Of a stretch of 64,000 nucleotides of DNA, positions 7,804 to 46,803 are shown piece by piece. Origin of the DNA: Phyllobates terribilis (taxonomy: Eukaryota); assembly GCF_046119375.1 (NCBI RefSeq), contig NW_027362762.1, forward strand, positions 58,280,001 through 58,344,000. Reading direction: 5' to 3'. The stretch's first letter is position 1; every line of letters starts with the position of its first letter. The notes under the pieces were generated by a model. It did not search any database. It was not told the DNA's origin and saw only the letters and a list, made by a program, of their open reading frames with translations. Position numbers and translations under genes: made by a program.

Positions 7804-8591
7804 CTTCAAAGTTTATCCAAATGTACCTAGTGCTTATAAAATGGTGTCTCTCCCACAACCCTCTGGTTATCATGTGGTTTTGTGTTTTTTTTTTAAATAA
7901 AATCCAGATTTTTCAAGAAGATTGTTTATATCGGATTCATAACTAAAAACCATTAGCTCCTTGGGTATTGCTGGGTATAATCTATAACGCTGGAGGAACC
8001 CAGCAACTTAATTCTGAAATCAATTACACTTACACCCTGTATTATACTCCAGAGCTGCACTCACTATTCTGCAAACAAAAATAACCCTCATTCCCATAAT
8101 AAATGTATTTTTTTTTTTTAACCGGCTCGGCAGTTTAGCTGTAGAAACTGATGAAAAAGCTGGATGACAAAATTATGCTGTTTTGACATCACTTGAGGCA
8201 CAAGAAAACTAGTAAGCCATATATTAATCACCAGAACTAGCCCTGAAGACATTGATCCAAGCAGGAAGTTTCTGAACTAAAGCCTCACATCTAGCGGACC
8301 GAATAAATTCATAAAACTCTGTCACAGCTGCCACGTCTGTAGTTTCTGGTTGCTGGCGGGGGGCTCTGCAAACCATCTCCTACCTACCGGCAATCCCTTG
8401 GCTCCTCCGGATTTACTGGCCAGGTAATAATGCAGACAACATGCACCAGGCCAGCTAATCAACAAAACAAAAGCTGAGGCTGCTGGCAGGTAACCGGCTG
8501 TTTGCAGGGATCCTGGCCGGCCGCTACACCAGGGTCCTGTGAATGTATTCGCTTATCTCTACCCAGAAACATAAATGCAGCTATGGACTAA

Positions 8592-9172
8592 AGCCCCCGT
8601 CTCACATAGCGAGATCGCTGCTGTGTCACGGTTTTGGTGTCGCTATGTGTGACACCTTGCAGCGATCAGGCCCCTGCTGTGAGGTCGCTGATCGCCGCAA
8701 AGTATCCTGGACCATTTTTTGGTCTTTGCCCTCCCGCTGGTCAGCACACATCGCTGTGTGTGACCAGCGATCAGGCTAGTAACCATGATAAACAGCGGGT
8801 TACTAGGGGCACACAAGCACTTAGTAACCCGCTGTTTATCATGATTACCACTCTGCTACAGTTAGCGGTAACCTCCCGCTCACCGTAGCAGAGTGATAAT
8901 CATGATAAACAGCGGGTTACTAAGTGCGTGTGTGCCCCTAGTAACCCACTATTTATCATGGTTACTAGCCTGCTCCTGCTTCAGCAGCAGGCTGGTAACC
9001 AGGAGCAGGACATCGTGGAAAGATTCTTTCCACGATGTCGCTGCTCCCCTGATCGTTGGTGAGCCTGCCTGTTTGACAGCTCACCAGCGATCACATAGCG
9101 ACGCACCAGCGATACCGGCCAGGTCACATCGTTGTCGGGATCGCTGGTGCGTCGTTATGTGAGACGGTACCC
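8592..9172. mobile_element. PIF/Harbinger-type MITE with internal palindromes
   Basis: TAA at 8589-8591 and 9173-9175. TIR core CCGTCTCACATA[G/A]CGA. Internal inverted repeats built on ATCATGATAAACAGCGGGTTACTA. Confidence 0.75.
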
Positions 9173-12100
9173 TAAGACTGAGGCCTCATTCACACTTGCA
9201 AATAACTTTTCAATCAGCAGCTTCATAGTACAGATGCTGTACAACTTGTATGCCCTCCAGGAAGAATAGGTCTTATTATAGGACATAAAAAGAGTAGTGT
9301 ATGCTGCCACATTTTAGGGTCAGTAGTGTGATTGACATGCAGATCCCCTGTCCTCTAACAATACAATGTGATCACCATAGAGGAACATCACTTCAGTAGA
9401 CACGGAGGGGGGTCTGGGTGCTGCAATATGGCCCCTGTAAACACAGCACTGGGCAGAGATGGCATCACTGAAAATAAGGCGGCTGCATTTACCTCTCACA
9501 ATCAGATTCTAAGGTTTGATCCTTGCAACAGCAGATTTAGAAAAATTTTGGGCACCGAATAAATTGCCCTTCTTAAAAGGATATAGTTGAAGGGTTGTGA
9601 GAGTCTTACCTAAACATGCCCATCTGCTCTTCCCGTGCACTCATTCTGCATTTTTTTTTTTACCCGTCTCTCAAGATGCACCTTATAGATAAGCTCATAA
9701 TATAATTAAAAAAAACAAAACAAAACGTATTCCCCAAAAATACCAACTCCCCCCCCTTAGAGCATGCATGTCAAAATCTGGCCCACGACACCTATGTGGG
9801 GCCCATTATTCTGTATGGAGGACTATGTGATGTCCATAATACTATATGAAGGACTGTCAGGCCCATTAGTCTGTATGAAAGTCTATGTGGGGCCCATTAT
9901 TCTCTATGAAGGACTTTGTGTGAACCATTATTCTGTATACTGATTGTCCCGCAACTTTGTCCAAGTTTTTAATTATGGCCATGTGTTTAAGAGTTTCACA
10001 TCCCTGCTTTAGAGGAATGACTTAAAAGGGGGAAGCACAATACCCAAAATGCCCTTAGAAATAGATATTAACTACACCCTAACCACTGTTGTAATTAACT
10101 TTAGTACACCACTTCTCTAATCCCTAAATGTTTGTTTTTTTAACAACTTCCTGTGACGTTTTGTTTGACTGGAGTCTCACACATGACGTTACAGGATGCT
10201 GGCGCTGCACTCACTTCCTGCAACATCCATCGCCCCTCCTAGCACAAGATGGCATCATGGGGGCAGCATTGCAATTACATAAAAGTTTCTTGCATTGTCA
10301 CTGTCTGCAGCTGTCCTGGGTGAAAAAAAAAAAGCTGTGCTGTGGGAGAGGTGAGCGCAGCGCCAACACTGCTTCTATCTTTTGCCGCAGCGTCTCACAG
10401 TGCATCAGGGGGATGGCGATAGAAGCAGAGCAAGATACACCAGTGCTGGCCCATGATTACAATTCATTTGAGGGCGGTGGCACGGGTGTAAATCACCCTG
10501 CTTTCATCACTGCCCCCTGATGACACCATGGATCCAGGACATCTTCAGAGAGCGATGATGAAAAACCGTGATAAGTGACCGCAGTGCCGCCCCCCGATGA
10601 AGTGCTGTTTGAGAAGGGGTGATGGACGCTGCGAGAAATCAAGTGCAGCCCCAGCCTCCTGTGGCTTTCTGTTTGAGATTCCCATCAAATGAAAAGTCAC
10701 AGGAAATGAATTGGAAAAAAAACAAAGCATTTAAGGATTAGCAGGATAGTAGAGTACAAAAATGCTTGGGGTGTAAAGAGACATTTAAAAGGGCATTAAA
10801 GTGCCAGACCAACCCTATAACGGCATCAAAAATGGGTAATTAAAGCTGACAATCAGCCGTTTCAGAGTAGGAATAATAGCAGCTTCACAAGTCCAGCTTT
10901 CACGGTCTAAGCTACATTTGTCAAACTTTGGCCCACAGGTCAAATCTTTCAACTTGCAAAGGCTTCCTAAGTGTTTAAAAAGGTCCCTTAGTCTGTTTCA
11001 GTAGGCACCGCATGGGGAAGACTGCTGACTTGACACATTTTGTATTGAAAAAAAAAAAAAAATTTACTTTTTGATGATATTCTAATTTAGTGAGAAGCAC
11101 CTGTATATCAGTATCCTAGATGTAGATACAGTTTAACCCCTTTACCACCTTGGCCTTTTCATTTTTATTTGCTCCTCTTCTTCCCAGACCCATAACTTTG
11201 TTTTTATTTTTCCATCAATATGGCCATGTGAGGACTCTCTTTTTTCGCACAACGAGTTGTACTTTTGCACGACACCATTGGTTTTACCATATAGTGTACT
11301 CGAAAATGGGAAAAACAGCCCAAAGTCTCTACATGGCTAGGAGTCTGTATTGCTCAGGTCAGGAGACCTGTGACTGCTCCATGTTCAGACCTCAAACGTG
11401 TGAAACTACAAAATGCAGGGCCCTATGATTTCAACTTATTTTACGGGGGGTGCAAGTATTCATCAAAAACACACTAGCCCAGAATAGGCACCAGTCCCAC
11501 ATGGGAATGCTCCTCATCTACCCTTTAAATGCATAGTCGGAATATCCCCTTTAAAATAAAACAATGAACATGTTCGCATGTGTGAGCCATGAATATGATT
11601 GTGTTGTAACAAACCATAGTACACTTTAAACCAGGGAGGTTTTACCCCCTTGTCAAGTCCTGGTTTATGAGGTTTTTGCATTAGTAGGGTAATGCACCGT
11701 CTGCTGCAGACACGAACGCTCCACCTCCATGTATTAGACGTGGACGAAGCTGTTTGAAACAAAGAGGAGATATTAATTTATCAGGATCTCATTACTGGGG
11801 AGATAGAATAAACATACCACACAATGTGCAGCCACCGGTTTATTACATCTTACACTACATCGTTATACACAGGAACAATTAAGATTTGTGCTGCAGATAC
11901 ATTTCTTCCATTGCTGCCCGGTTTTCCAAAAGAAAAAAAAATAGTGTCCAATGCACAAATATATACAGACATGAGCAGGTGTAATCATACAGAGCGGCAT
12001 CCATTACCAGAATGCACATGAGTAGAAACTGATAAACGTGAAATTATACATCGTGACATCACAGAAATGCATCCTCCCTCCGCCTGATCTGTGGACTCAC

Positions 12101-15100
12101 GATCCAGAAGCAGATGGTCTGGTATTATATTCCGTCCCATTAAGACTCGACAGCGCTCACACTTTAGTCCGGCAGAGCCGCGAGGTTTGCCTATAATACC
12201 GCCACTATGTAATAAACACAAGATCTGCTTGGACCATGCAATCAAGGGGAAAGTGTTCACCCAAACCTACAAATATTAAAGGGGTAATCTGGCCCTGCTC
12301 ACATACGCATCGAGAGGACTGGCAATGTCACCGGCATGGTGCACCCAGTCTATTCGTTAGAGGACAAGGTATCCGCCAAACCCACAGGAGGCATCTAGAC
12401 GAGACACCACCAATCCTACTCATCTCTTGGAAGTGAGAAAAGCTGGAAAACCCCTGGAAAAGGAATTTTTTACCACCCAATGCGAGAGCAGCATGAAGTA
12501 GAGGCAGAGACCCCGATTCCAGCAAGGTGTCACTTACTGGGCTGCTAGCTGCAGTTTTGATAAAAATCAGTTTTAATCAGCAGATCATCACTAGAGGACT
12601 AGTAAACCTGCTGCCATATAGACCTCCATAGTCAGGAGCTCTGTATAGCCCCACACCCATCATTGATTTTCAGCTTTCTGGCTATGCACAGAAAACTGCT
12701 AATCAGTGGTGTGGACAGGTTTATATAGAGCTGCGCAATTAGAAAACGGCTAGATCTACAGCAGAGAAAACGGATGTTATAATCTGCAGAAAGCAGCCCG
12801 GTAAGTGACATCACTGGAACCAGGGTCTCTGCCCCTACATCATGTTCCTTTTAGATGGGGTTTAAAAACAAAACAATAAAAACTGGTGATAAGATTCCCT
12901 TTAAAAGATCTATAGTAAATGAAAAGTTTAAGCGTCATTTTAAAAAAATATTTTTCTTCAATTTCCGCTATACCTTTGTCTGATCTATCGGGCCAAATAT
13001 TACTCTGTTTGCTCACAATGAAATGTACCATTGCTGCATACTAAACTCAATATCCTCCTGGAAAGATTAGCAGGAATATGGACCTTAAAAGGGGTATTCC
13101 CATCTCCAAGATCCTATCCCAATATGTAGTAGGTGTAATATTAGCAAATATACTACATTTCTAATCGGAGGTAACTAATAATGGCATTCTAGACATAGAT
13201 CCGAGCAGCTTTTCCATATGATTTAAGGGCTTCTTCAGGTAACTAATCTCTGGGCCACCTATGGACCCCCTACCATATAAACCAGGAGATACGGGCTCAG
13301 GTGGGGAATTGCATCCAATACCACCAGGATACTGTTATGTAAAGAAGCCCTTACTTTGTGGGCACTAGTTTTTTTAAAAAAGGGACGTACATTGCAGACA
13401 TGGTACGGTTATATTTTATGGTAAGGTCACTTGCAGGTTGGGCTTGTGATTATTACATTTTATTCATTAGCATGGCATACCAGACAATATCTGCTCCTAT
13501 ATCCTGGTCCCCCCCCGGAGAGATTAATCATTTCTGGCAACTACCCACATTATAAGATACGTTACAAACAATAGGGATGCAAAGAGGAAAAAACAAAAAG
13601 AAAGCCCTGTGGTTACCTCGTCTCCTCCTGTACCATACCATACAACCTTTTATTACAAAGCAGGACATGTGCGGTGAGCAGCGGGTCCCGAATCTTCCGC
13701 CCCATACAGCTGACTCCACTTTAGCATAAAAGAAAACAAGGATGCTAAATACACAAAGCTCAATGGAGAGAAGCGAGATTTCAAAAGGTTTCCGAGTCCA
13801 CAAAATATTCCACCAATGCACAGTAAAGCGTACGATGATGGGGGTAGTTGTGGAAGTAGTGTCATATCATTCCACTTTATCGCTACGACCCAGATATAAT
13901 CGCCAGTAGTTCTGGGATCATAAAAGACTAATGGTTCAATACAACTGATACCTTTTGAAATCTCACTTTACAAACAATATCAATGTTACAAGAAACACCC
14001 ATCCCAGAACCTGCACTAATCTCCCTCCTGGGCTGAAGGAACAGATATTTTTTTACTCTTTTCAATTCTGAGTAACAGATACGATTAAATTAACACACCC
14101 TTATTGACCTACTTTAAAGGTGCACAAGGGGGCCGCAGCCTTAAGGAGGGTTTTCAAGGCTTACCTTAGGATAGGTGATCACCTAGATTGGCAGGGGTAC
14201 AGCACCTGGCACCTTCAATCTCTCTGGTGCTGCCAAGTGTCAAACTACCACTGATCATCTATCTCCAAGTCCTGAACCACCCCTTTAATGCTGCTCTTAC
14301 GACTGTTAGGGCACAGTCAGACAGACATACAAAATCTGACCAAGATCGAACTGCAATACTCAGGCCGACTGCATGAAAGTGGCCGCCGGACAGTCAGAGC
14401 AATGCAGTCCGATTTATAAGGCCGTATGACTGCATCCGTAAGGTGCTTCATCACCTGGGATAATAACGATGTAAAAGTGAAATGTCCCCTTCATACACCC
14501 TTACAGCAAAGGTTCAAGTATGTTGCTCTGTCCTTCCTCTGTGTTCAGTTTCTGACATGGGAACAATTCACACACAGATTTGCAGAAAATATTAAATCTC
14601 TGCTGCTTGTCTGAATTAGGCTGTGGCCGCAGGTTTCTGCAAGCCTCGTTGAAATTATTGTACAGTCATAGAAATTCCTGCAACTAATCTTTTTTGCATG
14701 ATGTTACTTTTAGAAGATCCACATTGAGACCTCAATTCTGGGCCTGACCCTATAGAACCTTACGGTTTCAGAGAGAGAGAGAGAGAAATTAAAAAAAAAA
14801 AAAAAAAAAAAAATGTATGGGTCTCCTATTCTTGTGAACCTTTTACAACCTGAAAGTGTCCTCATTTAATGTGATGCTGTCTGAGCTCAGATGTTGGCTG
14901 CTTTTCTATTTTAAAGTTAGATTTTTTTTTTTTTTAAATGATGCATTTAACATGCAGCCAGATATGGACAAATAGTGGGGTTAGCAACTACAATTCCGGG
15001 GCTGTCAAGGCACGCTGGGATTTGTAATTCTGCATCTGCTGTTGTGCCGTAGGTTGCTGACCCCATCACTACACCCTATATACAAAAAAGAAATCACAAT

Positions 15101-15494
15101 GATACAAGAATTAGACTGAACTGGAAAGATTGCAGCCCGAGTCTACTGTTAAAGTTCAAAGTGTCATTCCCATATTCAGCAGGTCTTGATATCAAACACT
15201 CATTTACAGCTTTTTGCCTAGGAGACAGACCACCGATGCTGAGCGACAACAGGAGGTAACAGCTTCAATAGAAAGGAGCTTGTTCTGTTGTCTAGCGGTG
15301 GTGGTCGGTCTCCAAGGCAACAAGCTGTAAACAAAAAGTTAATATGCCAAGAATGGCTGAAAATATATTGTATTTACACTACGAAAACAGGAATAACCCT
15401 TTACACTGACTTTAATCTTCCCAGCTGAGGGCAGAACAGTAAGGTATGCACCTAGCACTTGGTGTCAGCAGTAGTTAGTGACTTGGATCCTTAC

Positions 15495-15572
15495 CAGGTT
15501 GCGAGACGTATAGGTCTTGCTCTTTAAACACTCCTGCAATGGAGCAAGCCGACAGTTCACCTAAAAGAGAAA
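15495..15572 (-). CDS. CREBZF: Predicted CREBZF alternative exon; first 16 nt are coding (completing I, then FSFR*)
   Basis: Acceptor CCTCTCTTTGACAG|TTTCTCTTTTAGGTGA. In frame with donor AAAAT|GTAGGG at 15948/15947. Downstream donor CTG|GTAAGG at 15495/15494. Confidence 0.6.
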
Positions 15573-15943
15573 CTGTCAAAGAGAGGTTTACTAGTATTAC
15601 ATAGTGACAGCAGAGTCAGATACATGCACGCCCCCCCCCGTCAGTCCAACTCAACCCAGTACAACAGAAAATAAGAGCATTATGCCCGACTCGAGATAAA
15701 CTTTGGCTGTGCAGTTACACAAATAAGTCATAGAGGGGCGCTCCAGCACTGCTTAAAGTTAGGACGCAATACTGATCGCCCAGGCAGCACATTATATACA
15801 TAGCTCTCTGCATGCAGCCTAATTCCTGGAGACGCCCCGCCACCCCCTCTATTAAGGGCGCCTCAGTCCACAGCAGCGCTGCTTCTCCCCCCATATTATC
15901 TGTCCTCAGGATCCATCCAGTACATAAAGTTTGTTACTTGACC

Positions 15944-16699
15944 CTACATTTTGGCTGAAGCGGCCGCGCTCCTGGCACAGGCCGGGCAGAACTCCACTGA
16001 CACCTTCTCCTTGTCCACATGCAGGCAAACTCCAGCAGAGGGTGCCTCTTCTTCCTCCTTTTCCTGGTGCACAGTACTGGCAAGTCCTGGCAGCGCGTAG
16101 TCGTGGTCATCAGGCTTCACAGAAGGGTCGCGGAATAGTGACGTAGACAGCTTGACTCCGCCCAGTCCGGTCAAGCGGCTGAGTAGCTGGGACAGGGCGC
16201 TGTCATTAGCCAGCACGGCACGCAGGTAGCGCGCCTCGGACTCCAGCTCCAGGACGCGCACTCCCAGGGCCCTCCGCTCCTGCTCCAGCCGGACGTTCTC
16301 CTCGGAGAGCCGGGTCACCGTGCGCTCCAGGCCGCTGACGTACTCCTTCTTGCGCAGGCGGTTCAGGCGAGCGGCCACTGCGTTCTTATTGCCGGCGCCG
16401 CGCCCCCTAGTGGCCATTGGCTGCGGTGCGTCACACGCCTCGGGGCTTGTAGCGGTGGACGCGGCCTCCTCCGGGATGTGCGGAGAGTCGTCAGCCCCGA
16501 CTAGCTGCTCCAGCAGCTCAGTGAAGGAAGGGTCTTCCTCCTTCCACCATGGCGCGGCCTCCTCCACGGAGAACAGCTCCGACAACACAGCGCCGTCACA
16601 CTCTCCGCTAGTCTCCACAACACGACTCCGGCACACTCTCCTCCGGCTACGAGCAGTGGCGGCCGCGGCCTTAGGACGCTCCCTCAGCCGGTGCCTCAT
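15944..16699 (-). CDS. CREBZF: CREB/ATF bZIP transcription factor (Zhangfei), 251 aa, unspliced form
   Basis: Starts MRHRL (human starts MRHSL) in an AGCATG context. b[20 protein letters not shown]...[13 protein letters not shown]-1-binding motif DHDY, and conserved tail [20 protein letters not shown]...KM*. Syntenic position fits. Confidence 0.95.
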
Positions 16700-16744
16700 G
16701 CTGACCGACTCCCTCTCTGCGAACGTCGTAATGGCGTCTGTGTG

Positions 16745-16850
16745 AGACGGAAGTAGGAAGAGATGTGCCACGTGACCCCTTACGTCACGGAGCACGCCTT
16801 ATATAGCGCGATAGGCTAGGCCACGCTCTTTATTTTTCTGGCGGGAAACA
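16745..16850. promoter_or_regulatory. CREBZF proximal promoter motif cluster
   Basis: ETS CGGAAGT (about 16748), G/E-box TGCCACGTGACC (about 16765-16776), CRE-like TTACGTCA (16780-16787), TATATA (16800-16805), E2F-like TGGCGGGAAA (about 16837-16846). CpG-rich context. Motif matches only. Confidence 0.6.
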
Positions 16851-17419
16851 GTCATGTGGCCGGAGGCAGCGAATCACGAACTGCCGTTGTGTGAGGTAAA
16901 GGACAACACGTATAAGAAACCTGCTGGAGGTCAACGATTACAATTTCTGAGCAGTGACAAGATGAAGGCCGAATGGTTTCCTCATGGTCACACAGCATAT
17001 TATATAGATCGATTTGCTTTCATACAGTATAATGGCCCCCCACAGCCCTCAAAATATTATAATGGCCCCACATAGCCTTCCATATAGTATAATGCGCCCC
17101 CCATAATCCTCCATATAGTATAATGAACTTCCCATGTTCCTCCATAGAATAAAATGCACTCCCCATAGTCCTACATGAAGTATATTACACACCCCATAGG
17201 GTAAAATGCAGCCCCCATAGAGTATAATGCACCCCACAGTCCTGCAGTATTATGGACACCACAAACTCGCTGATTTTAAAATACTGTACATTTTAAATAT
17301 CCAACCCGAGTATAGGCCGAGGTACCTAATTTTACCACAAAAAATTGGTAAAACGTATTGACTTGAGTATAAGCCTAGGGTGGGAAATGCAGCAGCTAAT
17401 AGTAAATTTCCCCATCATG

Positions 17420-18515
17420 ATATTTGTGGCGCCCCTCAATCCCACAATCCTGGTATGCATCGCCTCCTCATCCCCCAATCCTGGTACTTATGGCACCCCT
17501 TATCTCCCAATCCTGGTGTGCATGGTCTCCTTGTCCCCCAATCCTGGTATGTATGGCACCCCTCATCCCCCAATCCTGGTATGCATGGCCTTCTCATCCC
17601 CCAATCCTGGTATGCTTGGCCCCCCTCGTCCCTCAATCATGGTTTGTGTGGCCTCCTCATCCCCCAATCCTGGTATGTGTGGCCCCCTCATCCCCAAGAC
17701 TGGTATGCATGGCCTCCTCATCCCCCTATCCTGGTGTGTATGGCCTCATCATCTCCCAATTCTGGTATGTATGGCCTCCTCATCCCCTTATCCTGGTATG
17801 CATGGCCCCCCTCATTCCCCAATCCTGCTATGTGTGGCCTCCTCATCACCAAATCCTGTTATGCGTGGCACTCCTCATCCCCCAATCCTGTTAGGTGTGG
17901 CTCCCTCATCCCCCAATCCTGTTATGCATGGCTCCCCTCATCCCCAATCCTGTTATGCATGGCCTACTCATCCCCCATTCCTGGTATGTATGGCTTTTTC
18001 ATCCCCCAATCCTGGTATGCATGGCCCCCCTCATCCTGGTATGCATGACCTCCTCATCCCCCAATCCTGGTATGCAAGGCCTCCTCATCCCCCAATCCTG
18101 GTATGCAAGGCCTCCTCATCCCCCAATCCTGGTATGCAAGGCCTCCTCATCCCCCAATTCTGGTATGCATGGCCCCCCTCATCCCCCAATCCTAGTATGT
18201 ATGGCCTCTTCTCCCCCCAATCCTGGTATGTGTGGCCCCCTCATCAAGCAATCCTGGTATGTGTGGCCCCATCACTGCACACAAAAAAAAACACTTATAC
18301 TCACCTTCCTTCCTCACCTCTGCTCCAGCGCTGCTGTGTTCTGTCTGACATCAGCTCATGTCGGCATCTGAACAGCACACGCTCTCAGATATCAAGGTGA
18401 GCTGCTGCTGATGGCATATTCACTCCCCTCCACTTCCCGCGCTTCTTCGGGGCCATCCCGGCTCCCGGGCCCCATAGCAGTGGCGTGGCCTGCCGCCATT
18501 GGCGGTACGCCACTG
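17420..18515. mobile_element. Non-autonomous DNA-element remnant (hAT-like end TACGCCACTG) with a degenerate ~30-bp tandem array (CTCATCCCCCAATCCTGGTATGCATGGCC)
   Basis: Array visible at 17420-18260. Right end GGCGGTACGCCACTG at about 18515. Left TIR not found. Confidence 0.55.
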
Positions 18516-46653: not shown

Positions 46654-46803
46654 NNNNNNNNNNNNNNNNNNNNNNNNNNNNNNNNNNNNNNNNNNNNNNN
46701 NNNNNNNNNNNNNNNNNNNNNNNNNNNNNNNNNNNNNNNNNNNNNNNNNNNNNNNNNNNNNNNNNNNNNNNNNNNNNNNNNNNNNNNNNNNNNNNNNNNN
46801 NNN
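46654..46803. other. Assembly gap (150 N)
   Basis: Run of N. Confidence 1.

Follow-up and report, generated by a model that had tools for sequence, protein, structure and literature searches.

The CREBZF gene of Phyllobates terribilis very probably carries a splicing module of the human type at its 3' end, and the tailed mRNA that this module would produce is predicted to be prone to nonsense-mediated decay (NMD); its use in P. terribilis, its NMD sensitivity and the function of the tail are what we infer from the comparisons given below. The gene lies on the minus strand of the window, by which we mean the whole stretch of 64,000 nucleotides that was analysed (positions 58,280,001 to 58,344,000 of contig NW_027362762.1). 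Its open reading frame (ORF), which looks intronless, runs from an ATG at 16699 to a TAG at 15946-15944 and encodes 251 amino acids ending in ...SAKM. A public protein of P. terribilis annotated as CREB/ATF bZIP transcription factor (P0001) is 100% identical to the window ORF, and further matches extend from other dendrobatoid frogs, with 81-88% identity, down to fishes; a search among representative proteins with CREBZF returned 28 of them, with E values up to 1e-30. The bZIP domain (PF00170, from precomputed Pfam assignments) was present on P0001 and on nearly all the matches, being rated as weak in one listing, and the C-terminal block VSVEFC...K-M-stop, a conserved CREBZF feature, is also present in the window ORF. 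By sequence comparison, the window gene is the frog orthologue of CREBZF (Zhangfei).

In the basic region of the bZIP domain (window 16369-16395 region), the signature position of the frog protein is still occupied by Asn, as it is in 124 of the 147 scorable homologues, mostly from amphibians and fishes. This residue is replaced by Ala or Ser in turtle, bird and mammal-like CREBZF proteins. Mammalian Zhangfei has been noted as odd for the absence of the bZIP signature Asn; on the compared sequences, this absence looks amniote-specific. Regarding the genes next to crebzf, a gene with C2 and FYVE_2 domains (SYTL2-like) and a TMEM126 gene were found beside it in a fish locus, L008 (L008:1-1963 and 7982-9283), and a C2-domain gene in Engystomops (L006:1-1788), which suggests, from the related loci L006 and L008 only, that synteny of crebzf with SYTL2-like and TMEM126 genes is conserved.

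The first-pass annotation of this DNA had proposed that a splice donor, AT/GTAGGG (the slash marks the cut in nucleotide motifs), is hidden in the final Met and stop codons, and that its joining to an acceptor across a 375-nt intron yields a product ending in KIFSFR. Every letter and coordinate of this proposal was found to be right on the minus strand. The ORF ends with the letters AAA ATG TAG GGT, where a GT comes after the AT at 15948/15947; the acceptor of intron 1, ...CTCTCTTTGACAG, ends at 15573, and exon 2 begins at 15572. The join of 15948 to 15572 reads AT+T TTC TCT TTT AGG TGA and gives ...SAKIFSFR-stop, with Met swapped for IFSFR. The mini-exon downstream of the intron does exist, but it is an internal exon of 78 nt, followed by a second intron and a third exon (Table 1). 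In the window, 62 nt separate the IFSFR stop from the junction of exons 2 and 3 downstream of it. Splice-site strength was judged by eye versus the consensus: the first donor is weak, with T at -1 and G at +4 and +6, and the second one is strong (GTAAG). In addition, the beginning of exon 2 contains a second AG, whose use as acceptor would give AT+G TGA, thus KM-stop and the same protein as the unspliced mRNA. The element TTTCTCTTTTAG/GTGA at 15572-15557 juxtaposes an acceptor and a donor-like sequence, as in tandem or recursive sites, and is conserved in frogs, turtle and fishes.

Table 1. Features of the CREBZF gene in the window; coordinates are window positions.
Feature	Position	Strand	Basis or remark
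TATA-like box TATATAAGG, CREBZF promoter	16797..16805	-	sequence; RNA-like contigs begin 35-45 nt downstream (16754-16764)
Exon 1: 5'UTR and whole bZIP coding region, ATG 16699, end AAA AT	15948..16764	-	5' end from contig starts
Last Met codon and TAG of the unspliced mRNA; donor AT/GTAGGG inside	15944..15949	-	cut at 15948/15947
Intron 1, 375 nt, kept in the default mRNA	15573..15947	-	annotated span; missing from cDNAs L001 and L002
Exon 2, 78 nt, internal, end CAACCTG/GTAAGG	15495..15572	-	separate block for cDNAs L001 and L002
Tail codons (I)FSFR and stop TGA (15559-15557)	15557..15572	-	sequence; 16/16 nt invariant in four frog families
Second AG, 12 nt into exon 2, TTTCTCTTTTAG/GTGA	15561..15562	-	sequence; X. 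tropicalis model; motif conserved
Intron 2, 1776 nt, strong donor GTAAGG, acceptor ...TTATGCTAAAG	13719..15494	-	missing from cDNAs L001 and L002
Exon 3 / 3'UTR, AATAAA 11844-11839	11827..13718	-	cDNA blocks from 13719/13718 downward; contig ends 11827-11867

Two further motifs lie downstream of the TATATAAGG box (16805-16797), ahead of the contig starts: TGACGTAA (16787-16780), which is CRE/ATF-like, and CACGTG (16774-16769), an E-box. Both are possible candidates for stress or bZIP inputs to the CREBZF promoter. Directly upstream of the promoter lie two tandem arrays, one with about 27 copies of a 31-nt unit and 81% matches (17427-18274) and a smaller one of 30/31-nt units (17021-17199), which are the cause of the long proline-rich ORFs called mechanically there. 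In another region of the window, a run of 150 N (46654-46803) corresponds to an assembly gap or a masked stretch.

Analysis of the public P. terribilis model revealed a protein of 255 aa with the C-terminus SAKIFSFR, versus 251 aa for the bare ORF. Its gene span in GCA_046119375.1 is 1143 nt, equal to window positions 16699-15557; thus, the public model already uses exactly the 375-nt intron. The claim that annotation based on ORFs would miss the tail holds for a bare ORF caller, but not for the public annotation, which already has KIFSFR. This 255-aa annotation could have been transferred by homology instead of being supported by RNA. Transcripts of P. terribilis were checked on assembled contigs of four runs, and the RNA status of the runs was guessed. 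Contig coverage begins at 16754-16764 and ends at 11827-11867, near the AATAAA at 11844, with none outside; such coverage, bounded by the TATA box and the AATAAA, fits an RNA origin of the contigs. Two of them (record 16 of X15, 14937-16754, and record 32 of X2, 15422-16764) cross intron 1 and the second donor without interruption, so the assembled form is the unspliced mRNA of ~4.9 kb. The joint of 15948 to 15572 was found in none of the P. terribilis contigs of the four runs, a result that is uninformative on absence, as contigs drop minor variants. One contig (run X15) lacks 2 nt in a poly-G run of intron 1 (15631); most likely, this difference reflects a length polymorphism of the G run or a slip of the assembly there.

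These contigs could be read as the sign of a splice that is unused in Phyllobates, where only the unspliced KM mRNA would be made and the 255-aa model would be a homology transfer: all P. terribilis contigs covering the site in the four runs are unspliced, and, the genome itself excepted, no recorded assembled contig encodes the exact 255-aa product. However, none of the splice signals is damaged, and all of them match exactly those of frogs with spliced cDNAs; contig assemblies lose minor variants, and low abundance is what one expects of an NMD-prone form, so we regard a dead splice as very unlikely.

Besides being an annotated product in P. terribilis, the proposed KIFSFR splice was present in assembled cDNAs of two other frogs. 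These KIFSFR-ending matches were on Logan assemblies of ~1 kb from public runs, L001 (SRR5149374) and L002 (SRR6291278), the source of the latter being a bufonid (94% to Bufo bufo) and that of the former another hyloid frog. Both contigs read ...AAAAT/TTT(T or C)TCTTTTAGGTGA... across the junction, and when mapped on the window, they were split into three blocks: exon 1 up to 15948, exon 2 from 15572 to 15495, and exon 3 from 13718. Both junctions of the frog cDNAs recurred in a third contig, L007 (SRR27880518), from a turtle-like cDNA. The first AG was used in the three cDNAs inspected (3/3), and the second AG in none of them, the one hint of its use being an X. tropicalis protein model that reads KMWFLAF....

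The comparison at the DNA level included the window, the frogs Nanorana, Eleutherodactylus and Engystomops, the teleost Stegastes, and the further fish L008, and all these loci read ...KM-stop-GQV in frame. No difference was found in the 19-nt donor context CAAAAT/GTAGGGTCAAGTA between the window, Stegastes and the three other frogs, and L008 has this context too. Intron 1, of 375 nt in the window, measures 270, 396, 2130, 185 and 189 nt in the other loci, with its junctions fixed, and exon 2 ranges from 71 to 78 nt in every species compared. Among the four frogs, which belong to four families, the tail and its stop are invariant (16/16 nt). Mean pairwise identity is 85% for the last 40 nt of intron 1, 84% for the final 90 coding nt of exon 1, 74% for the non-coding part of exon 2 that remains and 37-43% inside intron 1. 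Frogs and the teleost have in common the second donor, TG/GTAAGGATC, and the acceptor flank of exon 3, and a Y-tract-TAG/GTR motif persists in frogs, turtle and two fishes.

Some further stretches of the locus showed conservation. The start of intron 1, AUGUAGGGUCAAGUA (15935-15949, minus strand), is invariant from frogs to fishes beyond the needs of U1 pairing or of the stop codon, and it includes UAGGGU, which we take to be a high-affinity motif of the hnRNP A1 type. The start of exon 3 (13560-13718, minus strand) is 85-90% identical among frogs, its acceptor flank being recognisable in the teleost. In addition, protein models of salmonids and Leptobrachium enter exon 3 in two different frames, which points to exon-2-skipping or other isoforms annotated elsewhere.

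A match to four of the five residues of the mammalian tail with an immediate stop had been considered unlikely by chance, and this was confirmed in mononucleotide shuffles in which the donor was fixed and any AG within 3 kb downstream was accepted, at least 4/5 of IFFFR followed by a stop being counted and no pyrimidine tract being required: 110 of 20,000 shuffles (~0.55%) gave such a match. A GT...AG pair resembling the mammalian tail by accident can therefore arise at this rate, but not with spliced cDNAs in relatives, junctions invariant across vertebrates and intron length that varies between fixed ends; chance resemblance is extremely improbable, and we consider it ruled out by the cDNA contigs of the relatives and by conservation.

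The mammalian IFFFR isoform, to which the first-pass annotation had pointed, is documented in human, where the same splice event of CREBZF has been described (Li et al., bioRxiv 10.1101/2022.10.10.511668, the source of all the human data used here). The human intron has 213 nt; when it is spliced out, the stop alone is lost and IFFFR is gained. Among cDNA clones, the unspliced variant is the commonest, with 341, and the doubly spliced variant c comes second, with 177; by the 50-55-nt rule, the preprint classes the spliced variants as NMD substrates, and it calls the junction "highly conserved" among homologues. According to this single preprint, which is not peer reviewed, the CHOP promoter is activated only by the tailed isoforms, chiefly the short stZF, and stZF is induced by prolonged ER stress, its half-life in human cells rising from 2 h to 5 h under stress (bioRxiv 10.1101/2022.10.10.511668). 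A literature search on the CREBZF splice, including nonsense-mediated decay and intron retention, returned nothing beyond bioRxiv 10.1101/2022.10.10.511668. The frog module is similar to that of the human tailed isoforms ltZF/stZF and variant c in its default unspliced mRNA, in the removal of the stop only and in the added pentapeptide, and it shares with variant c the downstream intron, a stop that falls under the 50-55-nt NMD rule and the conserved junction sequence. It differs from variant c in the size of intron 1 (375 versus 213 nt) and in the tail, IFSFR instead of IFFFR (S for F), and the frog protein has 255 aa, whereas the human one is a 354-aa form plus the tail. Stress induction and CHOP activation have been reported for human cells.

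In the mechanism that we favour, the default product would be an unspliced mRNA of ~4.9 kb whose ORF ends in ...SAKM-TAG. The weak 5' splice site AAT/GTAGGG inside the Met and stop codons would be used occasionally or under regulation; a weak first donor, a strong second one and an assembled unspliced form fit such default retention with occasional or regulated splicing. Once the donor is used, the 375-nt intron would be removed and the frame would run 16 nt into the 78-nt exon 2, with IFSFR replacing Met before a TGA stop. The subsequent removal of the 1776-nt intron 2 would leave 62 nt between this stop and the exon junction downstream of it. The tailed mRNA is therefore a predicted substrate of nonsense-mediated decay, as proposed for human, unless decay is relaxed, e.g., under stress. 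For NMD sensitivity and regulation in the frog, we extrapolate from the general 50-55-nt rule and the human preprint, and the function of the frog tail would be that of the human tailed isoforms, able to activate the CHOP promoter.

The switch had also been proposed to predate the split between amphibians and amniotes, and protein models place it well before that split: isoforms X1 and X2 of the coelacanth end in KIFSFR and KM, respectively, sharks have KIFFSR..., and turtles and lizards KIF(F/S)FR.... The IFSFR tail is present in most frogs, in addition to the coelacanth X1, and IFFFR in some frogs and caecilians, ILFFR in salamanders, and IFF in percomorph fishes, often as a KM/KIFF pair of X1/X2 isoforms. 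Other tails are longer, such as IFFSR plus 10 more residues in sharks, IF(F/S)FR plus 11 more residues in turtles, gecko and lizard, and IF(F/S)FR plus 10 more residues in Xenopus laevis and Rhinophrynus. The gene in the window shares with the RefSeq X1/X2 models (coelacanth, bichir and teleosts) and with shark models the donor inside the Met and stop codons and the K-I-F... start of the tail, but tail length varies among these models, from IFF in percomorphs to 5 aa in the coelacanth, most frogs, salamanders and caecilians, and 15-16 aa in the groups that have a sense codon in place of the stop after Arg, namely sharks, sauropsids and pipoid frogs. Pairs of KM and KIF... isoforms are annotated in coelacanth, bichir and teleosts, sharks carry the KIF... 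tail, and the C-terminus of invertebrate-like homologues is not KM. At the DNA level, the splice module is, from the compared loci, at least as old as the common ancestor of bony vertebrates, and by annotated models it would reach the ancestor of jawed vertebrates, the shark part corresponding to protein models only.

In the window, the frame that follows the TGA (15495-15556, minus strand) reads TVGLLHCRSV-stop and is similar to two extended tails, SFLALLHCRS in Rhinophrynus and WFLAFLCCRS in Xenopus. In these two frogs, a sense codon follows the Arg and the corresponding exon 2 sequence is translated.

The position of the new stop also varies. In the seven short-tail sequences that could be measured (7/7, the window and six others), the distance from stop to junction ranges from 55 to 65 nt. 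In the turtle-like cDNA, with its longer tail, the stop is only 29 nt before the junction, and in the fish L008, one extra T changes IFF-stop into IFLLGD..., with no stop in exon 2; bichir and conger protein models also read IFLLG. Because of the turtle-like stop and of the L008 exon 2, the NMD feature is not universal. Of the peptide, the NMD geometry and the nucleotide motif, only the last is universal among the sequences compared.

These data bear on a further claim of the first-pass annotation, that the tail is under selection, which stood only in part: its 16 nt are invariant in four frog families, but the same letters make up the pyrimidine tract and the AG/GT, and they are read in another frame in L008. 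It is possible, if rather unlikely, that the splice is real and the peptide tail mainly a by-product, the start of exon 2 acting as a splicing element (a tandem acceptor or a juxtaposed 3'/5' pair) in a module that shunts mRNA to an NMD-prone form, i.e., regulated unproductive splicing (AS-NMD). AS-NMD through introns in the 3'UTR is known for SR-protein genes and other regulators. The frog gene is similar to these genes in that a conserved alternative splice leaves more than 50 nt between a stop and the exon junction that follows it, and different from them in that the CREBZF splice also alters the end of the protein and in that the rule does not hold in some lineages. The tail codons are all-pyrimidine up to the AGG, and the vertebrate variants FSF, FFF, LFF and FFS correspond to pyrimidine-to-pyrimidine changes only, as expected if the peptide were secondary; likewise, the Y-tract-TAG/GTR motif is kept even where L008, bichir and conger change the reading, the non-coding remainder of exon 2 is also conserved, the stops of short tails keep their distance to the next junction, and the human spliced variants are listed as NMD substrates. 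However, IF(F/S)(F/S)R persists across sharks, coelacanth, amphibians and sauropsids, with IFFFR in human, the stops of turtle and L008 would escape the 50-55-nt rule, the cDNAs inspected use the first AG and not the second, and only the tailed isoforms activate the CHOP promoter in the preprint (bioRxiv 10.1101/2022.10.10.511668). On the present sequences, selection on the peptide and constraint on the splice signal are inseparable.

Beyond the human-type module that we prefer as explanation, a more speculative extension, which we hold to be unlikely, is that control elements can be read directly in this switch, as old as jawed vertebrates. The UAGGGU in AUGUAGGGUCAAGUA, which overlaps the weak donor, would make retention of the intron the default, the beginning of exon 2 would act as juxtaposed acceptor and donor, and the C-terminal Arg (or ...RG in sauropsids) might be a C-degron, one splice thereby setting the stability of both mRNA and protein. 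No description of any of these elements for CREBZF was found in the papers retrieved.

In conclusion, the splice that adds the tail is already known: its description in human cells dates from 2022, and the public annotation of P. terribilis has it as well. It does not represent a new mechanism. CREBZF is a regulator of the stress response and of metabolism, and the tail splice has been proposed as a switch that turns it into an activator of CHOP in prolonged ER stress. The modest addition made here is a three-exon module and a donor context that are fixed across bony vertebrates, with the tail in shark models, together with the 55-65 nt that separate the stop from the next junction in lineages with a short tail. 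The fact that the letters of the tail double as a splice element bears on what the target of selection is in this gene, the peptide or the fate of the mRNA.
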